Shown here one piece after another: positions 26,292 to 43,245 of a DNA stretch of 64,000 nucleotides; position 1 is the stretch's first letter, and every line of letters starts with the position of its first letter. The notes beneath the pieces are model-generated. The model had not been told where the DNA came from, made no database searches, and saw nothing but the letters and a program-made list of their open reading frames with translations. Made by a program: the position numbers and the translations under genes. Origin of the DNA: Oculina patagonica (Eukaryota); the NCBI RefSeq assembly GCF_052425735.1, contig NC_135760.1, positions 21,142,001 through 21,206,000 of the forward strand, in the 5' to 3' direction.

Positions 26292-27910
26292 ATGGAGGCA
26301 AAAGATATTATAAAATGGTCGATCCTGGGATTTTTCATTCTGTTTTTTCTCACTGGGCTGTCGCTGATTATTTTTGCAGTCACGGTAGCCACACCATTCG
26401 GGGACTATTTAACAATGAAAGCGGCTGCCTTCCCTGTGAACTATGGACTTAGAATCGGTCTTTTAATACTTATTCTTTTCATAGCAGGGCTATGTTTCTT
26501 TGCCATAGTGAAGGAAAACAACAGACTTTTAACCCTAGTGGCTATTTTATTCATCATATTATTCCTGGTTGAGTTCATTATGGGAATCGTTTATTTCTCG
26601 ATGAAGAGTGAAATAAAGCTAAATAAGAAGAAATTTAGCAATGGTCAACAAATGATGGCCGAGTACGGACTGGACAAGAAAGTCACTGAAGGCTTGGATC
26701 GAATCCAGCGGACTTACGCCTGCTGTGGGATTGTGGACTATCGAGACTGGTTCACTTCAAAATGGGCGGCTGCTCAGGTGTGTGAAACCCACCCTTCTCA
26801 TTCTAAGTCCCCTTTTCTAATAACTTTTCATACTCTACTTCTGTGTCTTAATTTTTTTAGTGTCCTATAACCCCTCCCCTTCTTGTCCCCCAACTTTCAC
26901 TTTCTCTGTCAACGCCCCATCCCCTCCCCCCCCCCCAACTCGAAAGGCTTTAAAAAGATATCACCTTCCCTCTTTCCTTTCCTAGGGGGCGGGGGAGGGC
27001 ATCGTAGGGGGGGGGGGGGGGGGGGGGGGGTGAGATAATAGGGGGGGGGGGGGGGGGGGGGGGGGGGCTCGTTTTATGGTATAGTACGGATGACTCTTCT
27101 GCTCCTTTGCTTAAGCAAACGCCTTCCCTTAGTGGCCCCTTATTCTTGGCTCCGGCAAGGCTCCAGCTATAGCTAGCTCTTTAAAGTGTATGTGACAGAT
27201 CACGGCTAAACTCTCTCTGTCTTGTGCCAATCAGTTTCAACAGACCAGACTTAGAACATCATCGACTGACAAGTCACTTCTCACTTGACTTCGGCTCAGG
27301 TTGTCGAAACGTCGGTCACCAAAAACATTTCTTTGGAATATCACCCAAACTATCAGATAATACGAACTATTGATTATCCCTGGGTTCAAACCATTAACTA
27401 GATTATTTTGTGTAACAGAATATACTCTTGTATCCCTAGGGCAAAAACAACATAGTGCCGTCCTCGTGTTGTAAGTTCCCGACGGAGAATTGCGGAAATG
27501 ACATGGATACAAAGAACCCTATGGACTTTATCAACATATTGGGCTGCACTGGTCTAAATTTCTCCTACGATGACAAAATGAAAGTGGTGGGAGGGGTGGG
27601 TCTAGCTCTCGGCTTCCTCAACCTGTTTGCTTTGTGGTGTTGTATTATCTTTTGCTTCTGTTTCAACGCCGCGCGGGGACTGAGTCCAGTAGACGCTCTC
27701 AAAGGAGAGGAGCCAAATGACGCGCCATCGTCGAGCTCATCGAAAAAGGGCCCTCGACGCTCCTCCGCGCAAAGCACGCCTGGTTCCTCGCGTCGCCAGC
27801 CCTCGAAAAAGGCCCTGCGTGCGTCGAAGGAAAGACTTAATGAAGACGACGATGATGATGATTTACCTCCTGATGCGTATAAAGATTTACTTGATAAATC
27901 ACAAGGGTAG
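26292..27910 (+). CDS. Tetraspanin, ~318 aa. Coding exons 26292-26777 and 27440-27910; probable upstream non-coding exon ending ~25135
   Basis: Three TMs, then EC2 with CCG (YACCGIVDYRDWF), PSSCC and GC motifs, then TM4. The phase-0 intron CAG|gtgtgt...ccctag|GGC joins the two ORF-track ORFs in frame. Confidence 0.92.
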
Positions 27911-29236
27911 AGTTAGAACTACACGGATTCTGCAGGAATTATGCTTTGTCAGCAATAGTTCGTTGACATATATCTTCCGGTTAGGACTGTTACACGGCGT
28001 GAGGATAAATTTGCGGGGCCATAAACTCCGTTTTGCTGGCTCGCATATGTTTATATTTTCTTGACCAGTGCCCCATTTATATTTTCAGGGGATGCTAGTA
28101 ACACTAACGCTAGGTACTTTTACGTTTGTGGTCCGACCTTAAACGAAGATTTGCCAAAAGCAAGTCAGTGACGTCACTGTGACCGACCCCATCCCATATC
28201 GAAACGGTATTATGTCGAATTGAAAAACAAGCCGATTTGCCCTTGTTTACTAAAAAGGCAAGATTGTCAAATAGGACAAAAGATCCTCGGTCTTGTGTCA
28301 AACAATATAAAGCTGGGTCACGTGAGAAGTAAGTCTGTCACCCCCCCTCCCCCCTACCCCCATTCCCTCCCCAACTTCGGCACAGCGCCCTCCCACTTCC
28401 AATACTATACCATTTACAAAGAACAATCGGAAACTTTAAACAAGTCCGTGTAATGGATCTGAAAAGACGAGAGGAAACAATATTTATAGCTAACTGTATT
28501 TTAAAACAGATGTTACACTGGTTGCCCTGTCAGAGATTCTTGTCTCTTATTGTAATAGGCAAGGGCGTTGGAAACACGGGGCAATTTTTAACGATAAAGT
28601 TGTTGCGTTAAAATTTGCCTCGGCGTGATCGTTTTGCTGTATATAAAATATATATCAAACTTTTACATTTAAATGGCACCATGTAATGGCAAAGCATAAT
28701 AAATAGTTTTTTTAGAACTCAATCGTATTTCAGTTTGGGGGGCATTATATTAATTTATTACTGTTCCGGTAGAGTTGTGCAGTGGTATATTCGTGAGCCG
28801 TGATAGGGTGATCTGTCATATTTTTAGACTTGAAACGTGAAGTGACTGTTGTAGTCTTCTTCGTGAAACGTGATTTGCTAGGTACGGTAACCGTGAACCG
28901 TAATTTCCTCGTGATGCAAAACGTGAAATGTGACGTGATTTTGTAGTTGCCCAAGCAAAATGTCTCGTCAAGCCATCCCGATCCCCCACTCACATCTCTA
29001 TACCCCGGCCTCATAATCACCGATATACGGATACGGACATTTTCAAGGTCACAGAGCGCGTAGTTTACTTGTTAACGTTCGTTGGTATGCCTGTGCAATT
29101 TGTGAGATTTTTCGCCAAAATTTTATTTTAATTTTTTAATTTCTTCGCCCAGAAAGCAATTATAAACTGATAAAAAAAATAAAATTTGATAAAAGAAAAA
29201 AGAAGAAACGAAAAAAAGGAGGAGAGAAAAAAACAT

Positions 29237-29283
29237 TGCCGAGACCCGGGATTGTTCAGAACTCATGCGAGTTCTCCGGATTT

Positions 29284-29334
<51 letters not shown>

Positions 29335-29339
29335 TCGGC
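29237..29339 (-). tRNA. tRNA-Phe(GAA) gene interrupted by a 30-nt insertion in the T-loop (possible pseudogene)
   Basis: Minus strand GCCGAGATAGCTCAGTTGGGAGAGCGTCAGACTGAAGATCTGAAGGTCCCTGGTTC[30 nt]AATCCCGGGTCTCGGCA. Acceptor, D and anticodon stems pair; a T7 Pol III terminator follows 4 nt downstream. Confidence 0.9.
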
Positions 29340-29452
29340 TGCTGAGACAATGGTGCAAAATTTTAGTTATTTATTTGTCATGTAAATAATCAGCTTTCAC
29401 TGAGTCTGCGTAGATTGTTGCCTCGCTTTGGTGTAATGAACACAAAACAAAA

Positions 29453-32400
29453 ATGGCGCTTCCGACATTACAACCGTACTGGTTGAAAAACTACAAAAAC
29501 AGAAATGAAGGACTTATGGTTCGTAGAACACAACATGAAGCGGAAAGGAGAGAAGTTTGGGACAAGAACGCAAGATATTTTGATCGATCGAATGTGGAGA
29601 CTACGAAGCAACGGGTTTGGGGATCAAGACAATCATACGAAGATAGGTAAGCTTAGTTATTGAAGTAGCTAATATATTAATTTACTGTAGTTAATATCGC
29701 CTAAAATACTTTACAAATCTTATCGTTGTGTCAAAGAAGAGACCGAAGCTTATGTCTTAATATATTATTCTTAACGCTCATGTTCTCCTTTAGCTTTCCC
29801 CCGCGAGATCTGCAGCTTTATAAAAGTTGCATATATCTCCTTGGTTACAAATTTAAACCGTTACAATTACAGGTGACTCTCGAATTCCTTTGAAAACAGA
29901 CCAGAAAGAAGCTAAAACGTTTCTGTAAATTTTGTGGGAAGAAATGATTTGAACTCTGACAAATTGAGGTTAACGTGATGCGGCATATAATTTATACTTG
30001 TTTTCTACATGACATGTACTTCTGTCGTTTCTATGATCTGAGATAACTGTGTTTCAAATGAAGACACCTTTCAGTGGTGAAAAGGCTTATTTGTTGTTCC
30101 CTGAGTAGATAGGTATATCTAATAATAATAGGTATATCTTGAGTTTCTAGGAAGAATATACACAGTAACCCTAAGCCTGCATTTCTCCCAACATATCTAA
30201 TTGAACAAAATCAAACCAAAAAACAATCGAACACCAATAGTTTGATTAGGTGTGGTAATCGAACAAGATCGAACAGCTATTTTGCTATAAGGTCGATTTT
30301 CGAACCAAATGAACCAATTGGTTTACAATCGAACTCAATCTGCTTCAATTTTGTTTGGAATCCGTCTTTGAAATAAACTCATGCAGGACTAATCTGGGGG
30401 GACAGTGTGCCGTACAAAATGTCTGCAATATAAACAAACAGGAGTTCGGGAATTGAACGTTTGATTAAGTATGATTGTCGACTGTTCGGTAATCGAAAGG
30501 TTTGATGTCGTTCCATTGTCCGAACTTTCTTGTGAATTTGATTATGTTCTATTTCCAAACCCAATTGAATGATTGGTGTTCGAATGGGTTTGATTACCGA
30601 ACATTTGATTGGATACGCCAGGATTTCTTTGGTGGTTATGAGGAAGATCTTAGTGTAGATTTATAAAGTGTGTGGTGCAAAGGTTGAATAACGCTATCCA
30701 CCAGATTAATCGCTATCCATTGAATACCGTAGTTTGTTTTGCCAACACTTATACAATAGATAGTGATTTAACTGATGATAAGCATTATCCACCCTTTGAA
30801 CAACAGGGACCAAATGAGTTGTTTTGGGTTAGAATAATGAAAAAATCTTGGGATAGACTTTGAGAAACCTTGGCACATCTTTGACTTTGGCGTGGGATGT
30901 ATATGTACTTATTTTTGCTAGCATGCAAGCACTGGATAGTTTGTTCAAGGAAGACATGAAGCAGGACAAGCAACAGAGATTAGAAGAAAGGAAAAAGAGA
31001 CTGTCAGAAATGTTGCTCAAGGAAACCAAGCAATATGAGGTAACCTGAGTCAAACATTACTATTAATAGTGACTGTAATAAATTATGCTGAATTAAAACA
31101 GTCAGTCATTGTATATAAAATGCAACCCTCTTAGAGTATACTAGTAGCATTGCTTGAAGTTGGGTTTTGTCTCTAAAAGATGGAAGAAACAATACATGTC
31201 TTCGAACATTTTCATTTTTGACACACGAAATGATTAGTTTCATGAAATGTGGGCACAGTACTGTATCAAGTCAAAAAGTGTTTGCAGGTCATAATAGGAG
31301 AACTATTATGTTTTTAATTGTACTAAAAAATATTCGAAAATGAATTGTAATGCGAATTAGAATGCCTCACCGCTTTCTTGAAATCTAAAACAACTTGCTC
31401 TATTTTTGCCAATTTTCAGGAAGAGCTTAAAGCAAAAAGACTTGGTGGAGCTGGACAACTACTACAAATGAAGGAGAGGTTTGTGAATGTGTCATGCACT
31501 TTTATTATCATTATGTAACATTACTTTTCGTGTATGACTTGAACAGAGTTGTATGTATGCCGATTTCTTCTGTAATTGGAGCTCAATCCCATTAAAGTCC
31601 AATTACAACTTTTGGTTACTCAATTTGTTGACTGTCGCCATTTAAATGATTGACGGCAACAAAAAACGTCATCATTTGTTGGGTTTTTTAACTTCAGCTA
31701 GTGTTATTGAAAGGCATAGTAACTGAGCAAATTATTGAACAATCAACATTTTAATTTACTTATTATTGTAACTGAATTGATAATTAAAATGTACTATGCT
31801 TTCCAGAGCTGACGAGCTTAAAGCTGGTAAGGAGACCAGAAGAAAGGAGGTACACGCAATTTATTATAAGATAATTACATGTAACTATTTTGCTTAAGTA
31901 CATAATTTATGAGCTAAGGTTATCATGCTGAAATTTTCAATAATGTATGCAAAGAAACCTGTTTTGGGGGATTTCCGCAGCAAAGCTAGAGAACTCACAT
32001 GCACAGTGTTTCAACTACACTGTATTTCCTCTGCAGATTGCTGAACAAAAATTATATGAACACTGGAAACAAAATGCACCAGAACTTAGAGAGGTAAGCA
32101 GTGCAAATGGCAGTTAATTATTTTTTAAACATTAGACATCACAGAAAACTGTAAAATTCAGTTCCCCCAAAAGAAACAACCCTCTGTTTGAACCCCCAAC
32201 CCCTCTGGAAATTCTAGTTTACATTAGAGCTCAATGCTTTCCTTTAAAAACTTCATCTTAATTCCCCTTTCATTTGACTTTCAATTTCAATTGACCTACC
32301 AATTGACCTGGGGTGGGTACGGACATCCTTCGGTGCTACACAATAGCACGTGATGTAATTATTAGTCAAGTGCAGTTTGTTTAAAATTAACTTGTGGCCT

Positions 32401-35400
32401 CACAATCCCAACTTTGAAAATGGTGAAAAATGCTTGGGCACTGAAGTCCATAGCATTCCCAGTTCGCACGCAGGAGAAAACACCGGGAACATCCCCCCAG
32501 ACCACATGGAGCAGAAGTCCATGCGGCTGACACCGCCACAGACCCCCCCAAAGCCAAGATGAAACCCTCCATGAGAACTGCGCCGCGACGACACGAGACG
32601 ACGCCCGCGCACGACGCGCACGCCGCGAACCGGTCACACGCCCCCGAGAGAACGGCCCCCGCGCAGCCGCCCGGGACTGACCCCCACCCGCGGAGCACAA
32701 CGGACAAGGAAAGGAAAGGAGCCCGCGGCAGATGTGAGGAGACAGACGCCCCAAGGGCCCCAGCAGAGAAGAAAGGAGGGAAAGAGCAAAGGACTGATGA
32801 CACTGCCAGGGCGAGGGCGACGACCAGACCAGCGGCAGGCGGAGGACGCGGACCGGTACCGCCTGATAAGGAGAACACTGCCATAGGGAAGCTACACTCT
32901 GTCAGGTTTGTTTATATTTACTATATGATTGTTTCTCTTTGATTTATTCAATTACAGATTGAAGCAGACCAGTTGAAGGAACATGTTGTGAACAGCTGGG
33001 CTGATCAAGTTTCTGACAGAGAAGAGGTAATGCATTGGATCATGTGTAAATAATTTCTAATCCTTGCAAAAATTATCTTTACTACTCTTATCAATTTCAA
33101 GAGTATTAAAATGGTATTAAATGGTAAAACTTGGGCGCGAAACTTCCCTCATTGCATACTCAATTGATATTAGTGGAGTAAAGCTATACATGTAAATTAT
33201 CCACTTTGGTTCTACATGTACGTTGTACAGTCACTATTGGTTCTTTCTATTTAGAACTTAAAAACAGCAAGACAAGAAGACAGAAGGTATGTTCTAAAAA
33301 GGCTTTATAAATACAGATTGTACTAAACAGCTTTGCAAATGCTGACAATGTATTTCTATATGTGTTGATAAAGTTCATAATATAATACTGCAGTTTACAT
33401 AGCTAGAGGCTTAATTGTTATTGCATTTAACTATGGATTGAGGGGTCAGGTCTGAGCAGTTCTTATTACCGTCGATTGCATCTACCCGTGGACGCACACG
33501 CTTTGAAGTTTAGCAGACCATAACGCGAACTTTTGCACTTAAAATGCTCACCATAAATACTGAGTACGGGCGAAACTTTACACTAGAAATGATTCAAGTG
33601 GACCTGTGTATGCATATCAACACAGATCAGCATCAATTTCTCGGAAGAAGTCTCCATATCCAGTCTTTCCACTATTTTGAAACTGGCATGTGTTGAACTT
33701 TCGGCACGAAAGTTGCTGTAATGGTCTGCCAGACTTCAAACGTTAGATGACCAATCATGCCATGTTTAATACCCAATTAGATCATGTTTTTCCGGCACAT
33801 GTTCACGAGTAAATGCAAGCGACGGTAGGCTCCAAGTGTTTATTTCCACATTGAAATATAAAATGGGTACCAGCAATTTTGGGGGATTATGATTTATCAG
33901 ACAAAATGCTGGGGAAACCTATATGGACTAGCATTCCAACAAGGGGGAGTAGAAAATACTCTTAGCCACTTCAAACTGGCAGAAGTTAAGTGCCAGGCTG
34001 TTGAGCCACTAAGGCAAGCTTCGGAAAGGTTTTCCTAATTTAAAGTCTTTAGTTAACATGTACATGTACTTGAATTCTCAATAACATAATTGAAATTTAA
34101 GGTGTAGAGAACTGATTGTTGTATTCAGTTAACTGTAGAAAAATAAATAGTTTGAAGCCATTATCTCTGCCGACAAAAGCCAACAAACAAACCATAAACT
34201 ACTCATTTGAATACTGGGCTTTTGATTTGTCAATTTTTGTGCGTTTCAATTTCCCGCACGCCGCCATCTCGGATTTTATGATGTCAGTCCGTTGCTGCTA
34301 TTATTAAAAAGCAGAGGTTTTTTTGTGTGAAACAATTGGGCAACACTTTCACATCATAAATTCCAAAATGGCACCGCGCAAAAAATTTAAAAGCCTTTAT
34401 GTTTACCATTAACGGTTGTAATTAAATGCTTTTTCTCCCCTGTCCCGTAAAATTTGTAATTATTAGGCAATATTTCAAACAACTCAACATCCACTTGCCT
34501 CAAGAGCAGAGGTTCCCTTTAACTTCAAACAGAACCAACACAAATTCGACTTACAGGGATATATTGACACTAACATTAATGCTAACCATTAGGCTGCTAC
34601 ATCAGCCTACACAGAGCTGTAAATAGTACTACTCAGTGCAGAATGGTAGGTTTCTAACAACCCTGTTTATTTTGTTAAAAGATTGGATGCCGCTATGGAA
34701 AGAGAAAGACTGCTGGCACTTGAAAAAGAAAAAGCTAAAGAGGAAGCAAAGAAAAGGTACATGTAATGAAATTGATACCATTTTCTACAGAAAGTTGCAG
34801 TGCAAAAGTTCTGGGAAGGTTCTTGTACTAATGGCATACCATAAAATCCCGGTTCTAAGCCCCCCACCACTTATAAGCCCCCCGGTTATAGGCCCATCTA
34901 CCTGGAAACAAAAAAATACACCCGATTATGCCGGATGACAGTACCAAACAGGGCTAAATGTTGCATTGTTATGCGTTTGTAACTTAAAAACGTTTTTTTT
35001 TTATTCCGCTTATAAGCCCTCCCGGATATAAGCCCCTCCGCTTTATGCCCACCCAAAACCTTGTATAAGCCCAGGGCTTATAACCGGAATTTTACGGTAA
35101 CCACATGTATGTGTGCCCGCAATGTTAATCACTTAATAAAAATGGATATTGAAGGCTAAAATAAACTTATCTTTATTTTACCAGGGAACAAGAAAACCTT
35201 GCAGAGGATCTAAAACATCAAATGGAAGAACTGAGACTAAGAGATGAAGAGGTAGGGTTCATGGTCTCTACTGTACTAGGTGTCAGAATGTTTTATGTAT
35301 AATTCCTGTTTTGCAACCAGTGAGATACATGCCATTTCACTTTGATTTTTTATTCTAAACAAAGTAATGGTACAATGCCAAGGTGTACTAATTATAATCT

Positions 35401-38400: not shown

Positions 38401-41400
38401 TTTTTGTGGGGTGGGGGTGGGCGCTTATTCGAGGCTGGGCGCTTATTAACTTTTCCTACCTTCAGGGTGGGCGCTTATTCGAGGTGGGCGCTAATTCGAG
38501 GTTGGGCGCTTAATCGAATAAATACGGTATATTTAACATCACATAATGTAAGGCTTTATTTTGTGTCCATTAGGAACTTGATTTGAAGATTTTAGAAGCA
38601 ATGGCCAAGAAGGTAATCTCTTACAAGTGTATATACAAAACGTTTATAGTGTTCATGTACTTTCATTATCTCTTAAGACAGAAAATCTGTACAATGTTTG
38701 CACAACCTGTTACGAGCACTTAACAGAAAGTTTGGGAGAGATTTTAAAATAAATTGTGAACTTGAATTACAAGCCATGGTTTATATGGCAAATAATGTGA
38801 ACTTCTCTTAAACTGACTTAACTGTTTCAAACAGGCTCTGTTCAGACTTTTTTTTTAGAGACTACACTACAGTGGAACCTCGATTTAACGAACCTCTATA
38901 TAACGAAGTCCTCGGTTTAACGAACGATTTTCTTCAGCCTGTCCAAAGTTACAGTAAAATGTATGGAACAGGACCTCGATATAACGAACCTCGATATAAC
39001 GAAATCCTCATTATAACGAACACAATCCAAACGTAAAATGTACCTCGATATAACGAAAAAATGTCAACACGCGACAAAAGATGAATGCAAGCAGACCAAC
39101 AAAGATGAAAATCCTTTAATCCTGTAACAAGAGAACAAGTTCAAGTACAGTATGCTCTTACTATATGCATATATTAGACATTATAAATGTTATTTTCAGA
39201 AATCGTCAATATCCGGAAATGCTGGGTTCGTAGTGCAGCGTAAAGTTGTTAAAAATTGATTAACTATACCTCGATATAACAAACATTTTGGTTTTTTTTC
39301 CGCGAATTCGTTATATCGAGGTTTTCAATATAACGAACCCTCAATATAACGAACAAATTTCCCCAGTCCCTTGGCACTTCGTTAAATCGAGGTTCCACTG
39401 TAGAAAGAGTTTATCTAACTGGTTGCTTTGTTTTCCACATTGCAACTTTTTTTATATATAAACAGAAAGATGAAGACAAAATACTTGAGACTTCTAGACG
39501 AGAGAAAGCAAGAGCAGATGCTGAGTACATGCGACAGGTGAACAATCCTCCAATACATAACCTTTGTCTAAAATACTTTGCTGTTAGAGGCCAGTCGTTA
39601 AAAGTACATATATTTTTTTTCTCTTTGCAAAGGTTGTTGCTCAACAACTCAAGTTAGAACAACAGAGGGAAGCAGAGTTGGACATGCTCTACAGGTAAAA
39701 TCTGTGTGCATTAGCCTACTGCACATTCCTGTTGCACATTCTTCTAAGATGTGAATGCACTGTATTTCTTTTTCGAGGGCAAAGCTGTTACTCGGCTTTG
39801 ATTGCCCTCGCGAGGTATGCCTGTTGTGTTTGAGTAATTCTGCTTTTTTGTTATCGAGAATCAAAACGAATTTACATTTATTCTAGAGACAAAGTTATCG
39901 TCTTGAAACAAAGCTTTTTATATGCGAAGATACAAATGTTTTGCTGCATTATCGTGAATAACAATTAATAAAGAATCAGAGTTTGCTAATAACGGCACTT
40001 GTAAACCCTGCTGAAGGTTGTACTTCTATTTTTTAAACTTGTGATTCGCAGAGATGAAGCAGCCCGAATGTGGACAAAGAGAGAAGCAGAATGGGAACGA
40101 GAAAGATTGGCGAGAGAAAGGCTCATGGCTGAAGTAAGGAAGTATTTTGATAACTTAGGGACTGGTCAATAAGTACCAGGGGGGGGGGGGGGTGGGCCGG
40201 AGCAATTGGAAAAGTGGTGGCGCGAAAATTTTTGACCCACCCCTTCCTTCTGGCTCAAAACTGACTGACCCACCCCTGATAGGGGGTTGAAAATTACATG
40301 ACCCACCCCCTTTGCTAAAAAAATCAAGGGACTAATCATTTCTTTATCATCTGTAAGGGGTTGGAGGTTTTTGATTGACATCAGGTTTTAAAGTAAAATT
40401 CCCTACATAGACCACCCTAATTTTCCCTGATGGACACTGCTGATCCATGTACGTCTTTTCCCGTTTCCTAACACACCAGAGGAGGATGAATTTATCACTT
40501 CTTATACTAGTCTTTTGTAAGTTTTCCACATATTTGTGTGTAAGTCCATGGGAAAATTTTGACACAAACATATGCAAAAACTGAATTATTGAAGAGTTCA
40601 TACAGAAATTGATAATGGAAACTACAACCACTGTCCATCATTTATATTTGCAAAGTGTGTGAGAAAAGAGCTTACTGGTATGAAAAGGCCTAAAGCCCAG
40701 TGTGAATCTATGCAGGTTGAAGAGAGACAGGCAAAACTGATGTTATGACAAAAACCATCTAGGGAGGTCGGGGGGCATGCTCCCCCTGGGAAATTTTTAT
40801 ATTTGGGCCTTCTGAAATCGCTAGAAATTCATTTAAAACTGCTAACATGGAGAAACTTATCAATTTGATATACTGATGAATACAACCTTTGGAACCATAA
40901 CATTTTAAAGTTTGTGAATAAATAAGATGACCCACCCCCTACATGAAGATCAAATTTACATAACCCACCCCTTTTGGAGGGCACAAAAACTGATGACCCA
41001 CCCCCTTTCTGCTCCGGCCCACCCCCCCTGGTACTTATTGACCAGTCCCTTAGACGGTTTATGTTCTTAACAAACATCATGGTTCTTCAATTGCGTAGCT
41101 AAGATGGCAGCTTACTGTTTTTTGGACTGTAGAACCTGATTTATTCGTTTAACGTTTTCAGGTGCTAGACGTTCGCAAGAGGCAACTTGATGACAAAATG
41201 GAGGAAAATAAACGCCGCCAGCAGGCGTCGATTGAGAGTCGAGAAGAACTGCTAAGAGAACTGGAGGAGGTTCAGAGGATGACAGCGAGAGAAAAGGTCG
41301 AGGAGGAGAGACAGCGGAGGGAAAGAGAAAAAGAAATTCATGAACAGGTTGGTAACATGATTGTCNNNNNNNNNNNNNNNNNNNNNNNNNNNNNNNNNNN

Positions 41401-43245
41401 NNNNNNNNNNNNNNNNNNNNNNNNNNNNNNNNNNNNNNNNNNNNNNNNNNNNNNNNNNNNNNNNNNNNNNNNNNNNNNNNNNNNNNNNNNNNNNNNNNNN
41501 NNNNNNNNNNACTAACGACTGACTGGCTGGCTGACTGACTTGCTGGCTGGTTGGCTGGCTGGTTGGCTGACTGACTGACTGACTGACTGACTGACTGACT
41601 GACTGACTGACTGACTGACTGACTGACTGACTGACTGACTGGTTGGCTGGCTGACTGGCTGGCTGGTTGGCTGACAAATGGACGAACGGACTTGTTCATT
41701 TAGCTCAGCTTTGTGTACAATCGATTCTCCTGTTGTTAATAATGCTGGGGTCAGAATTCAGTGTCCGCTCACCAAATGTGTCTACTTGGGAGAATGACCC
41801 CAGTTGTAAGACCAGAAAAAAGGGAGACGCAGACACGAGCTTGAGTCATTGCCAACTTAAATCGGTTTTCCAATTTCTACTTTCAACAGATAACGTCGCG
41901 TAGAGAAAAGGCGAAAGAAATGCAGCAAACTGAAAGAGAGGAACTAGAAAGGGAAAGGTAATTCAGAGTCGTTGAGAAATGTTCATATACCGCTGATAGC
42001 TGAGTAGTAGGTTGTTGTCAATTCAGATGGAAACTATTGTCTTCAATTTTGACTGTCGTTTCAGGCGAGAAAAAGAGGCATACAATCAAATGCTGAGGCA
42101 CGAAGCAGATCACATGAGAGCCAGAGGACCACATGCGAGGGTGGGTACTGTGTGCGATTGAACATTTAGCAGATCAGTCCGGGGAATAAGTGCCGGTTTT
42201 GGCAAATCTTCGTCAAAGCACTCGAAGAATTTCCGAATTATTTCATCCAATCAAAAACTAGCGCGAACGCTCACGAACGACTCCGAAAGCAAACACGCAT
42301 ACAAATACGTCATGTTGCGTAGTAACTTCTGGGACAAAAACCGCGGTCTCAGTCACTTCTCGGAGAAGTGTTGTTGCCATCAACTGGCACTTGTTCCCCC
42401 GAGTGAGATTATATATTTATTATATTAGATTTATAGACTGGTAGAGAGTTACAGCGAGGACCGAGTTCCTCAAAGTAATGATGTTTATTACCTTAGGGAC
42501 ATTACGATACTACGGTTCGGCAGCGGCACGACTATGTACGAATGTGCTACGACTACCTACGAATGTTACGAATGTGGCACGACTATTGTAGCACCGCGTA
42601 CGAATTCGGTACGACTACTGTATGACTACGAACGAATGTAGCACGGCTGCACGCAGTACGACTACGTAGGAATGCGGCACGACTATAGTACGGCTACGTA
42701 CCCAAGTAGTACGTCTCGCAGTACGACTACGCACGAATGTGCGACGACTGCGGTTCGAGTACATACGTATGTGTCACGACTACAGTACGACTAGGTACGG
42801 CGGAATGCGGTACATCTGCGGTACGACGATTCTGCCGTATAACTTGGCCTAATTTGAAAGCATGGATTGAAGAAATTGAATTGGTGGAAGAGGCGCAGCC
42901 ATAGAATACTAAATCCATTTTTCCTACTTTTTTCTTAGTTTGCTCCAAGGAGGAGGACAGCATTTGAATAGAATTATTCCCAATGCACCAAGCGGTGAAG
43001 AATTTCCACTCCATCAGGCTGAGATAACCGTGTTATGGTACCAGTACGCGAAATCGAGTGACAAAAGCGACGGGCACTTCGTTCGTCACACAACCGCTGT
43101 TCTCGTCACGAAATCCGCTGTCACGCGATCGCTTAACAAGAAAAATAGCAAGTGCAACGCAGATTGTGCAGGGATTAATTATTTTAAGGGAACTTTCAGA
43201 CTCGTGATTTTTTTACATATGGTTTATCTTCAGCAGTCTTGGTAG
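29453..43245 (+). CDS. TCHP: Trichoplein keratin filament-binding protein, ~496 aa. Exons: 29453-29646, 30922-31039, 31420-31478, 31807-31849, 32037-32093, 32958-33026, 33255-33286, 34682-34756, 35185-35251, 36380-36442, 36893-36942, 37624-37690, 38574-38612, 39466-39537, 39633-39694, 40052-40133, 41162-41347, 41890-41957, 42065-42140, tentative last 43234-43245
   Basis: N-terminus MALPTLQPYW...WDKNARYF...WGSRQSY and DEAARMWTKREAEWERERLARERLMAEV resemble vertebrate TCHP as recalled. E/K/R-rich coiled coil; GT-AG phases consistent. The terminal exon (QSW*) is uncertain. Confidence 0.9.
33467..33827. mobile_element. Palindromic MITE, older copy of the 35731 family
   Basis: taccgtcgattgcatctacc...gtaaatgcaagcgacggta; internal sequence shared with 35731-36138. 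Confidence 0.8.
34837..35099. mobile_element. TACCGTA-type MITE (TA flanks); same family at 57323-57675
   Basis: taccataaaatcccggttctaagccc ... gggcttataaccggaattttacggta. Confidence 0.8.
35731..36138. mobile_element. Palindromic MITE with ~110-bp TIRs
   Basis: ctgtcgattgcatctacctgtgaacgcacgcgc...aaactttgaagtttagcagaccg mirrors cggtctgctaaacttcaaa...gcgcgtgcgttcacaggtagatgcaatcgacag. Confidence 0.9.
37057..37514. mobile_element. MITE with GGGCGCTTATT subterminal repeats
   Basis: taccgtaatgatt...gcgccc / gggcgcttaatcgaatcattacggta. Confidence 0.8.
37991..38529. mobile_element. MITE with GGGCGCTTATTCGAGG repeats; contains a nested fragment at ~38240-38358
   Basis: taccctatttattcgattaagcgccc / gggcgcttaatcgaataaatacggta. 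Confidence 0.8.
38868..39402. mobile_element. pogo/Tigger-like MITE (CAGTGG termini, TA TSD)
   Basis: ta|cagtggaacctcgatttaacgaa ... ttcgttaaatcgaggttccactg|ta, with internal ATAACGAA repeats. Confidence 0.88.
40158..41049. mobile_element. PIF/Harbinger-type non-autonomous element (TTA TSD)
   Basis: TTA|gggactggtcaataagtaccaggggggg ... ccccccctggtacttattgaccagtccc|TTA. Confidence 0.88.
41366..41510. other. Assembly gap (N run)
   Basis: 145 N. Confidence 1.
41511..41690. repeat. (GACT)n/(GGCT)n microsatellite abutting the gap
   Basis: Direct tetranucleotide repeats. Confidence 0.95.
42170..42408 (-). mobile_element. Inverted copy of the repeat at 22172-22410
   Basis: Reverse-complement similarity over ~235 bp. 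Confidence 0.8.
42493..42840. repeat. Degenerate (TACGA/CACGACTA/CGAATG) minisatellite, probably a TE subterminal array
   Basis: Many imperfect tacga, acgacta and cgaatg units after ttagggacattacg. Confidence 0.7.

Follow-up and report, generated by a model that had tools for sequence, protein, structure and literature searches.

A split tRNA-Phe gene family of stony corals whose T-loop insert may be a non-canonical intron

What is the status of a tRNA-Phe(GAA) gene that carries 30 extra nucleotides inside its T-loop? The gene lies on the minus strand of a 64,000-nt stretch of Oculina patagonica DNA (NCBI RefSeq assembly GCF_052425735.1, contig NC_135760.1, positions 21,142,001 to 21,206,000), which we analysed as a whole and refer to as the window. 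The tRNA-Phe genes of animals do not normally contain introns, and the textbook exceptions to the 37/38 position of nuclear tRNA introns come from red algae and nucleomorphs. Reviews likewise place nuclear tRNA introns only at 37/38, apart from the red algal exceptions, which were found since essential tRNAs seemed to be missing (PMC3728597, PMC10485636). The eukaryote mode of tRNAscan considers canonical introns only (PMC8450103).

The comparisons presented here indicate that the split tRNA-Phe gene is almost certainly a real, ancient, selected and family-wide feature. The window gene probably belongs to a functional nuclear tRNA-Phe(GAA) family in stony corals, each gene of which is interrupted by about 30 nt. 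As to the insert itself, we favour, with moderate confidence, the reading that it is a spliced, non-canonical T-loop intron with a relaxed bulge-helix-bulge, the 5' end of which doubles as the Pol III B box.

Anatomy of the tRNA-Phe gene and its surroundings

The original prediction described an intact tRNA-Phe(GAA) body of 103 nt with pairing stems and a run of seven Ts downstream, a 30-nt insert in the T-loop whose placement could slide by up to 3 nt, a B box/T-loop sequence rebuilt by the insert, a hairpin within it, and complementarity between GUUCA and UGAAC. Each of these features is present in the sequence (Table 1). The acceptor stem (1-7/96-102), the D and anticodon stems and the distal T-stem (49-53/91-95) are all paired, with a single U51.G93 wobble. 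G20, G34-A36 and A73 can be read from the sequence. The GUUC that precedes the insert pairs with GAAC near its end, and this GAAC abuts the 3' arm of the hairpin without a gap. The 30-mer of the insert matches the window once, where no match is expected, and removal of 57-86, 58-87 or 59-88 gives the same product. The insert follows positions 56-58, in the T-loop and not at the eukaryotic 37/38 site. Its first bases complete the B-box consensus, and the rebuilt box lies at the normal distance from the A box.

ARAGORN made no tRNA call on the whole window, and the Rfam tRNA model gave a partial match there (model positions 8-63, 41.2 bits) that runs through the rebuilt proximal T-arm. When a 31-nt T-loop insertion is allowed, the Rfam model spans the whole gene at 50.3 bits and aligns the 3' exon as T-stem and acceptor. 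A four-arm GAA cloverleaf is reached only after 30 nt are removed in silico; ARAGORN then calls a perfect tRNA-Phe(GAA), in either of the two registers discussed below.

The gene sits between two protein-coding genes. A two-exon tetraspanin gene (26292-27910, plus strand, Pfam accession PF00335) ends about 1.3 kb from the tRNA 3' end. On the other side lies a first coding exon that had been attributed to TCHP. The exon is a conserved ORF in other corals and adjoins the split gene in one of them (L003), but Pfam and Atlas searches of these short exons did not confirm the TCHP identity; we call the exon TCHP-like and use it solely as a synteny anchor. Elsewhere in the window, a run of N at about 41365-41515 (a gap or masked sequence) falls in a coiled-coil gene downstream of the tRNA. 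A short G+C-rich block at 32362-32942 has overlapping long frames on both strands (up to 165 aa) in AT-rich surroundings, and is possibly a repeat or CpG-island-like element within an intron.

Table 1. Features of the split tRNA-Phe gene, its neighbouring exon and the tandem arrays. Coordinates are those of the window unless a contig is named.
Feature	Coordinates	Strand	Remarks
Whole split tRNA-Phe(GAA) gene, 103 nt	29237..29339	(-)	tRNA position p = 29340 - p
5' exon, tRNA positions 1-58	29282..29339	(-)	Acceptor 5' strand, D arm, anticodon arm, variable loop, T-stem 5' strand, T-loop UUCAA; invariant among orthologues except compensatory pair 28:42
Intervening sequence, 30 nt, 59-88 register	29252..29281	(-)	Elevated variation confined to 59-86
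Intervening sequence, 57-86 register	29254-29283	(-)	Equivalent to 58-87 and 59-88
3' exon, positions 89-103	29237..29251	(-)	T-loop UC, T-stem 3' strand CCGGG, acceptor 3' strand, discriminator A; invariant among orthologues
Insert hairpin, 7-bp stem 65-71/76-82 with 4-nt loop	29258..29275	(-)	AGAACUC-GCAU-GAGUUCU
Rebuilt B box GGTTCAAATCC, positions 52-62	29278..29288	(-)	First half exon, second half insert
A box TAGCTCAGTTGG, positions 8-19	29321..29332	(-)	Read from sequence; invariant in orthologues
Anticodon GAA, positions 34-36	29304..29306	(-)	
GUUC, 53-56, exon strand of proposed central 4-bp helix	29284..29287	(-)	G53 is -6 from the proposed 5' splice site
GAAC, 83-86, insert strand of proposed central helix	29254..29257	(-)	Y86 is -3 from the proposed 3' splice site
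T7 Pol III terminator (predicted)	29227..29233	(-)	3 nt past the discriminator A
Neighbouring first coding exon (TCHP-like)	29453..29650	(+)	ORF; head-to-head with the tRNA gene, whose 5' end lies 114 nt from the ATG
Tandem arrays	L063:7700-20252 (also L064); L065:1-20237		Each homogenised to its own hairpin variant

Conservation and copy number of the split gene in corals

We fetched orthologous regions through homologues of the tetraspanin exon-1 ORF and identified a split gene of 102-103 nt, with the same insert site, in six sources (L002, L003, L004/L005, L008, L009/L010 and the Tara metagenome scaffold L011). In these orthologues the split tRNA-Phe lies between the tetraspanin gene and TCHP-like exon 1, which answers the earlier call to inspect this locus in related species. 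The tetraspanin exon in the six sources is 84% to 67% identical to that of the window. Further orthologues with the same flanks are present on metagenome contigs L021, L034, L053 and L054. One additional NCBI assembly (L001) has an exon 1 identical to the window's and ends before the tRNA. An 86-nt 'tRNA-Thr' in L011 is a false positive in a simple repeat.

Across the orthologue sources, identity is 91-99% in the gene versus about 80-88% in its flanks. Among 12 syntenic orthologues, the exons vary at 2 of 73 sites (both in the compensatory pair 28:42 of the anticodon stem), the insert varies at 10 of 30 sites, and about 90-99% of aligned flank columns are variable, so that the flanks are saturated. 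Judged by these site counts, the insert is under purifying selection that is weaker than on the exons. By the same comparison, the tRNA body is under purifying selection and is not a pseudogene.

The hairpin has its own pattern of change. In an alignment of eight distinct orthologues (A1), the stem is 100% paired and four of the seven pairs show double-sided changes (for example AGAACUC/GAGUUCU, AGAGCUC/GGGCUCU, AGAGUCC/GGGCUCU and AGGGUUC/GAACCCU). The covariation score of this alignment was reached by 0 of 500 shuffles, and slid registers collapse. A second alignment (A2; 33 sequences, one representative per distinct stem, decaying copies included) contains double-sided changes in five of the seven pairs. 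The 65 distinct 103-nt copies carry 43 different hairpins, 25 of them fully paired and 13 with one mismatch, and the loop is free in sequence and 3-8 nt long. By this covariation, the hairpin is a selected RNA structure of which only the existence of the stem is conserved. Four copies (L017, L037, L046 and L050) have inserts of 33-34 nt that are lengthened solely in the loop or at the top of the stem, for example to an 8-bp stem with a 6-nt loop. In the copies compared, extra insert length is tolerated at the hairpin tip and not elsewhere.

These data bear on the possibility, preferred in the original prediction, that the insert is a one-off fold-back repair or a transposon-excision footprint at a single locus, and on the two outcomes that it named as refuting, a private allele and an assembly artefact lacking read support. 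The short terminal repeats (AA/AA, and AAUCC(C)GG twice) and the reuse of GUUC and GAAC words fit an ancient fold-back synthesis, and such an event may be the ancient origin of the insert. As an account of the present gene, however, a single-locus accident of any of these kinds is extremely improbable: the insert recurs at an identical position in several species that were assembled independently and across 160 complete copies, and it has evolved through compensatory changes. A recent footprint is at odds with an insert that is fixed at the syntenic locus and has acquired compensatory changes under selection; at least six further coral assemblies have the insert at that locus, which contradicts a private allele; and the independent assemblies rule out an artefact.

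The split gene is also abundant. A metagenome scan that asked for 8-38 additional bases behind the GGTTC of a tRNA-Phe body matched 50 contigs, several with two copies. All fetched coral DNA together contains 171 split copies (160 with both ends, 146 of exactly 103 nt, 79 distinct). The insert is present in 160 of 160 complete coral copies examined, a sample that was ascertained through the insert. Of the first 66 copies, 47 have a perfect 5' half and 63 have four or more consecutive Ts starting 1-6 nt downstream; nearly all copies have intact exons and T-run terminators. Their flanks fall into 18 unrelated families. The largest metagenome family comprises irregular gene clusters (3-5 copies per contig, spaced by 330-680 nt) in which the copies share the gene and up to about 130 nt upstream, and little more. 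Two tandem arrays lie on host contigs at 30x and 56x coverage: L063, with at least 42 copies at a period of about 291 nt, belongs to the same assembly as L008, and L065, with at least 37 copies at a period of 558 nt, belongs to the same assembly as L009/L010. The innermost unit of the L063 array is a degenerate copy with a shortened insert.

ARAGORN mis-calls many of the split genes as 'tRNA-Phe' of 67-75 nt, in which the rebuilt proximal T-arm is combined with an improvised acceptor stem (contigs L015, L022, L025, L026, L027, L033, L045, L004, L005, L009 and L010). Automatic coral annotations may consequently list truncated or shifted tRNA-Phe genes.

Do corals also have uninterrupted tRNA-Phe genes? 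Read on the opposite strand, the gene forms an open frame in which the insert accounts for exactly 10 codons, so a protein search recovers ORFs over both split and unsplit tRNA-Phe genes. With window:29186-29386:+ as the query, the best 120 of 210 matches include about 95 with the insert, in many variants, and about 25 without it; unsplit matches score lower in this search. Among these best 120 of 210 matches, 22 insert-bearing sequences lie on contigs of 0.1-2.7 Mb, versus 0 of 25 unsplit sequences on contigs of at least 100 kb and none on a contig above 26 kb (split vs unsplit on contigs of at least 100 kb, Fisher p = 0.003). The sole 73-nt uninterrupted gene found is a tRNA-Phe(GAA) with the acceptor stem GCCGCGA (L062:8825-9031). 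Its contig has 33% GC versus 40-43% at the coral loci, and 3x coverage versus 29-59x for coral contigs of the assembly series; the gene presumably comes from an associated eukaryote and not from the host. Scans of viral contigs for split and for unsplit junctions were both empty. The combined results suggest that every host tRNA-Phe gene found carries the insert, without uninterrupted host copies in the DNA fetched.

An alternative reading is that the split genes form a tRNA-Phe-derived Pol III family with another role or none (a regulatory RNA, a TFIIIC-bound insulator, a satellite or a retroelement passenger), and that uninterrupted genes elsewhere do the decoding. Much of the copy number does sit in tandem arrays, the syntenic copy lies 114 nt from the start of a protein gene, where a TFIIIC boundary is possible, and the search for uninterrupted genes covered the fetched DNA as opposed to whole coral genomes. 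Nonetheless, this reading is unlikely. A boundary element or decaying repeat is inadequate to account for exons that are so nearly invariant, anticodon and identity bases included, amid saturated flanks, and a DNA-only boundary or decaying repeat leaves the hairpin covariation unexplained. Nor is an element evident around the gene: terminators lie directly 3' of it, no element body or tail beyond the tRNA part is shared across the 18 flank families, and Rfam searches of the array units returned tRNA matches only, neither a hammerhead nor any other RNA family. The DNA fetched contained no uninterrupted host copy. A tRNA-derived SINE or a Penelope-type passenger likewise appears unlikely, given the 18 flank families and arrays in which Rfam detects no ribozyme module.

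The arrangement with the neighbouring exon recurs throughout. In all orthologous loci fetched (window 29237-29650, the six sources and the four metagenome contigs named above), some 100-115 nt separate the split tRNA-Phe from the TCHP-like exon, and the two stand head-to-head. The split tRNA gene may double as a promoter or boundary part of the TCHP-like gene.

Boundaries and fate of the insert

Two registers of removal restore a cloverleaf. Removing 59-88, or its equivalents 57-86 and 58-87, leaves the distal T-arm with a T-loop UUCAAUC. Removing 65-94, or its equivalents, uses the rebuilt proximal arm with a T-loop UUCAAAU, and is likewise a perfect cloverleaf for ARAGORN. Variation along the gene separates the two. 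Across the 65 distinct copies, the number of variant sequences per site is 0.1-1.6 in the body, 7 at 59-64, 8-17 in the hairpin, 6 at 83-86 and below 1 at 87-95. The G53-C61 pair is universal in tRNA. At the split gene, C61 is changed to A in 15-16 of 65 distinct sequences, the main array type of L063 included, and this change would break G53-C61 if the rebuilt arm were the mature one; we accordingly rejected that register. Because of the variation profile and the C61-to-A variants, we take the distal arm to be the real T-arm and 59-88 to be the insert. Within the insert-proximal region, positions 57, 58 and 62 are nearly invariant and 59-60 are freer, a pattern explained by the insert's first bases restoring the B box.

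The reading of the insert as an intron makes a specific proposal for processing. Pol III and TFIIIC would transcribe the split gene through the rebuilt B box. In the precursor, the T-stem (49-52/92-95), the helix G53UUC56/G83AAY86 and the hairpin (65-71/76-82) would stack in bulge-helix-bulge order, with the central helix abutting both T-stem and hairpin, gapless on the continuous strands. Each strand of the central helix is followed by AA, and the predicted cuts would fall just past the second unpaired base, between 58 and 59 and between 88 and 89, with G53:Y86 as the 'anticodon-intron-like' pair at -6/-3. The tRNA splicing endonuclease would make these cuts without its usual tRNA-body ruler, and an RtcB-type ligase would join the exons. 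The expected products are a 73-nt tRNA-Phe with the T-loop UUCAAUC and a 30-nt intron; cuts at these two sites would yield exactly a standard tRNA.

How well does the insert resemble a splicing substrate? The original prediction reported no clean bulge-helix-bulge, and our reading of the sequence agrees, as no register yields 3+3 bulges. The strict hBHBh' form (two 3-nt bulges and a 4-bp helix) is absent, since pairing of 53-56 with 83-86 leaves 8 nt (57-64) and 5 nt (87-91) unpaired. Calculated folding energies of alternative precursor folds differ by no more than 2-3 kcal/mol. Two changes seen in the L063 lineage favour extending the hairpin in another way. An alternative helix of 60-64 with 91-95 was rejected because G63-to-A variants break it. 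A relaxed rule has been described, in which a central helix of 4 bp is cut 2 nt 3' of either strand and exon -6 pairs with intron -3 (PMC8479045). At the split gene, the geometry of the G53:Y86 pair and of the AA positions fits this rule: GUUC at 53-56 pairs with 83-86 in 97.7-100% of cells, and G53:Y86 is G-C or G.U in 61 of 65 distinct copies. Changes in the central helix are, however, one-sided only (G-C/G.U and U-A/U.G), with no compensatory pairs, so that covariation does not establish this helix. According to published descriptions, animal TSEN acts on 37/38 introns alone and measures from the tRNA body (PMC10485636).

The insert could instead be kept, such that coral cytosolic tRNA-Phe is a translation-competent, five-armed molecule with an extra hairpin after the UUCAA T-loop motif. 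T-loop motifs of other RNAs tolerate insertions after the fifth base, and here both the motif at 54-58 and the distal T-stem are intact and invariant. The distal T-stem together with the hairpin has the lowest energy among the models explicitly evaluated, the strict bulge-helix-bulge is absent, and the conservation of nothing but a stem is what a stem that tucks extra bases away would show. We nevertheless consider retention quite unlikely. RNase P, the CCA-adding enzyme, EF1A and the ribosome all touch the tRNA at its elbow, and if the sole tRNA-Phe carried 30 more nucleotides there, each of these factors would have to adapt. Moreover, the bases flanking the insert mimic splice-site geometry (the 4-bp helix, AA after both strands and the -6/-3 pair), and nothing else sets the exons apart from a standard tRNA-Phe. 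It is a shade more improbable again that every Phe codon of stony corals is read by a five-armed cytosolic tRNA whose hairpin projects from the elbow and is never removed; if so, the contacts made by RNase P, CCA-adding enzyme, EF1A and ribosome would have co-adapted.

A non-canonical intron is now the leading explanation for the insert, a possibility that the original prediction had raised and ranked as the less likely one. Several implications would follow if this explanation is correct. First, the coral insert would be the first T-loop intervening sequence fixed in a seemingly whole tRNA-Phe family within Metazoa; our literature search on animal or cnidarian T-loop tRNA introns found no prior report. 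Second, the split genes would provide a natural substrate with which to test body-independent, motif-driven cleavage by animal TSEN. Third, an intron inside the internal promoter would be tolerated, since its first bases restore the B box. Finally, the insert would be the reason that tRNA-Phe genes of corals are overlooked or shortened by tRNA finders.

Comparison with known tRNA introns and extra arms

Animal introns at 37/38, including those that give rise to tricRNAs (PMC4536317, PMC6614914), resemble the coral insert in being short, and a 30-nt intron with a stable stem could likewise circularise. They differ in position: these introns lie in the anticodon loop, whereas the coral insert lies in the T-loop and overlaps the promoter.

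The extra arm that the coral tRNA would have if the insert were retained invites comparison with class II tRNAs, with their long variable arms, and with the nev-tRNAs of nematodes, in which a fifth helical arm is also present (PMC4033280). Those arms emerge between the anticodon and T arms and are part of the mature tRNA (PMC4033280), whereas the coral insert lies inside the T-loop.

Introns of Crenarchaeota and Thaumarchaeota offer another comparison (PMC8450103). They are short and occur at many positions, including the T-arm, and they have a 4-bp helix between two bulges and an inner intron helix (PMC8450103). The proposed coral fold has the same order of outer helix, central helix and inner hairpin. 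The archaeal bulges are 3 nt long and sufficient for the archaeal enzymes, unlike the coral bulges of 8 and 5 nt. The coral host enzyme is, moreover, the four-subunit TSEN, which is thought to need a tRNA-body ruler (PMC10485636, PMC8479045).

The red alga C. merolae provides a further parallel. Its nuclear tRNAs include genes interrupted in the T-loop region, exact removal of the intron restores the cloverleaf, and relaxed variants of the bulge-helix-bulge occur (PMC3728597). As in corals, the genes escape standard finders, and an essential tRNA appears absent (PMC3728597). Splicing has been demonstrated in the alga, whereas in corals it is predicted from sequence. The algal interruptions affect many isotypes, with multiple introns per gene and permuted genes; in corals we saw them in tRNA-Phe only, with one insert per gene and an animal host. 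Promoter architecture also differs. T-loop introns of C. merolae break the B box, and the alga relies on upstream promoters and lacks TFIIIC (2013, PMC3728597). In the alga both A and B boxes are broken by introns, whereas the coral insert regenerates the B box, so that an ordinary internal promoter can work.
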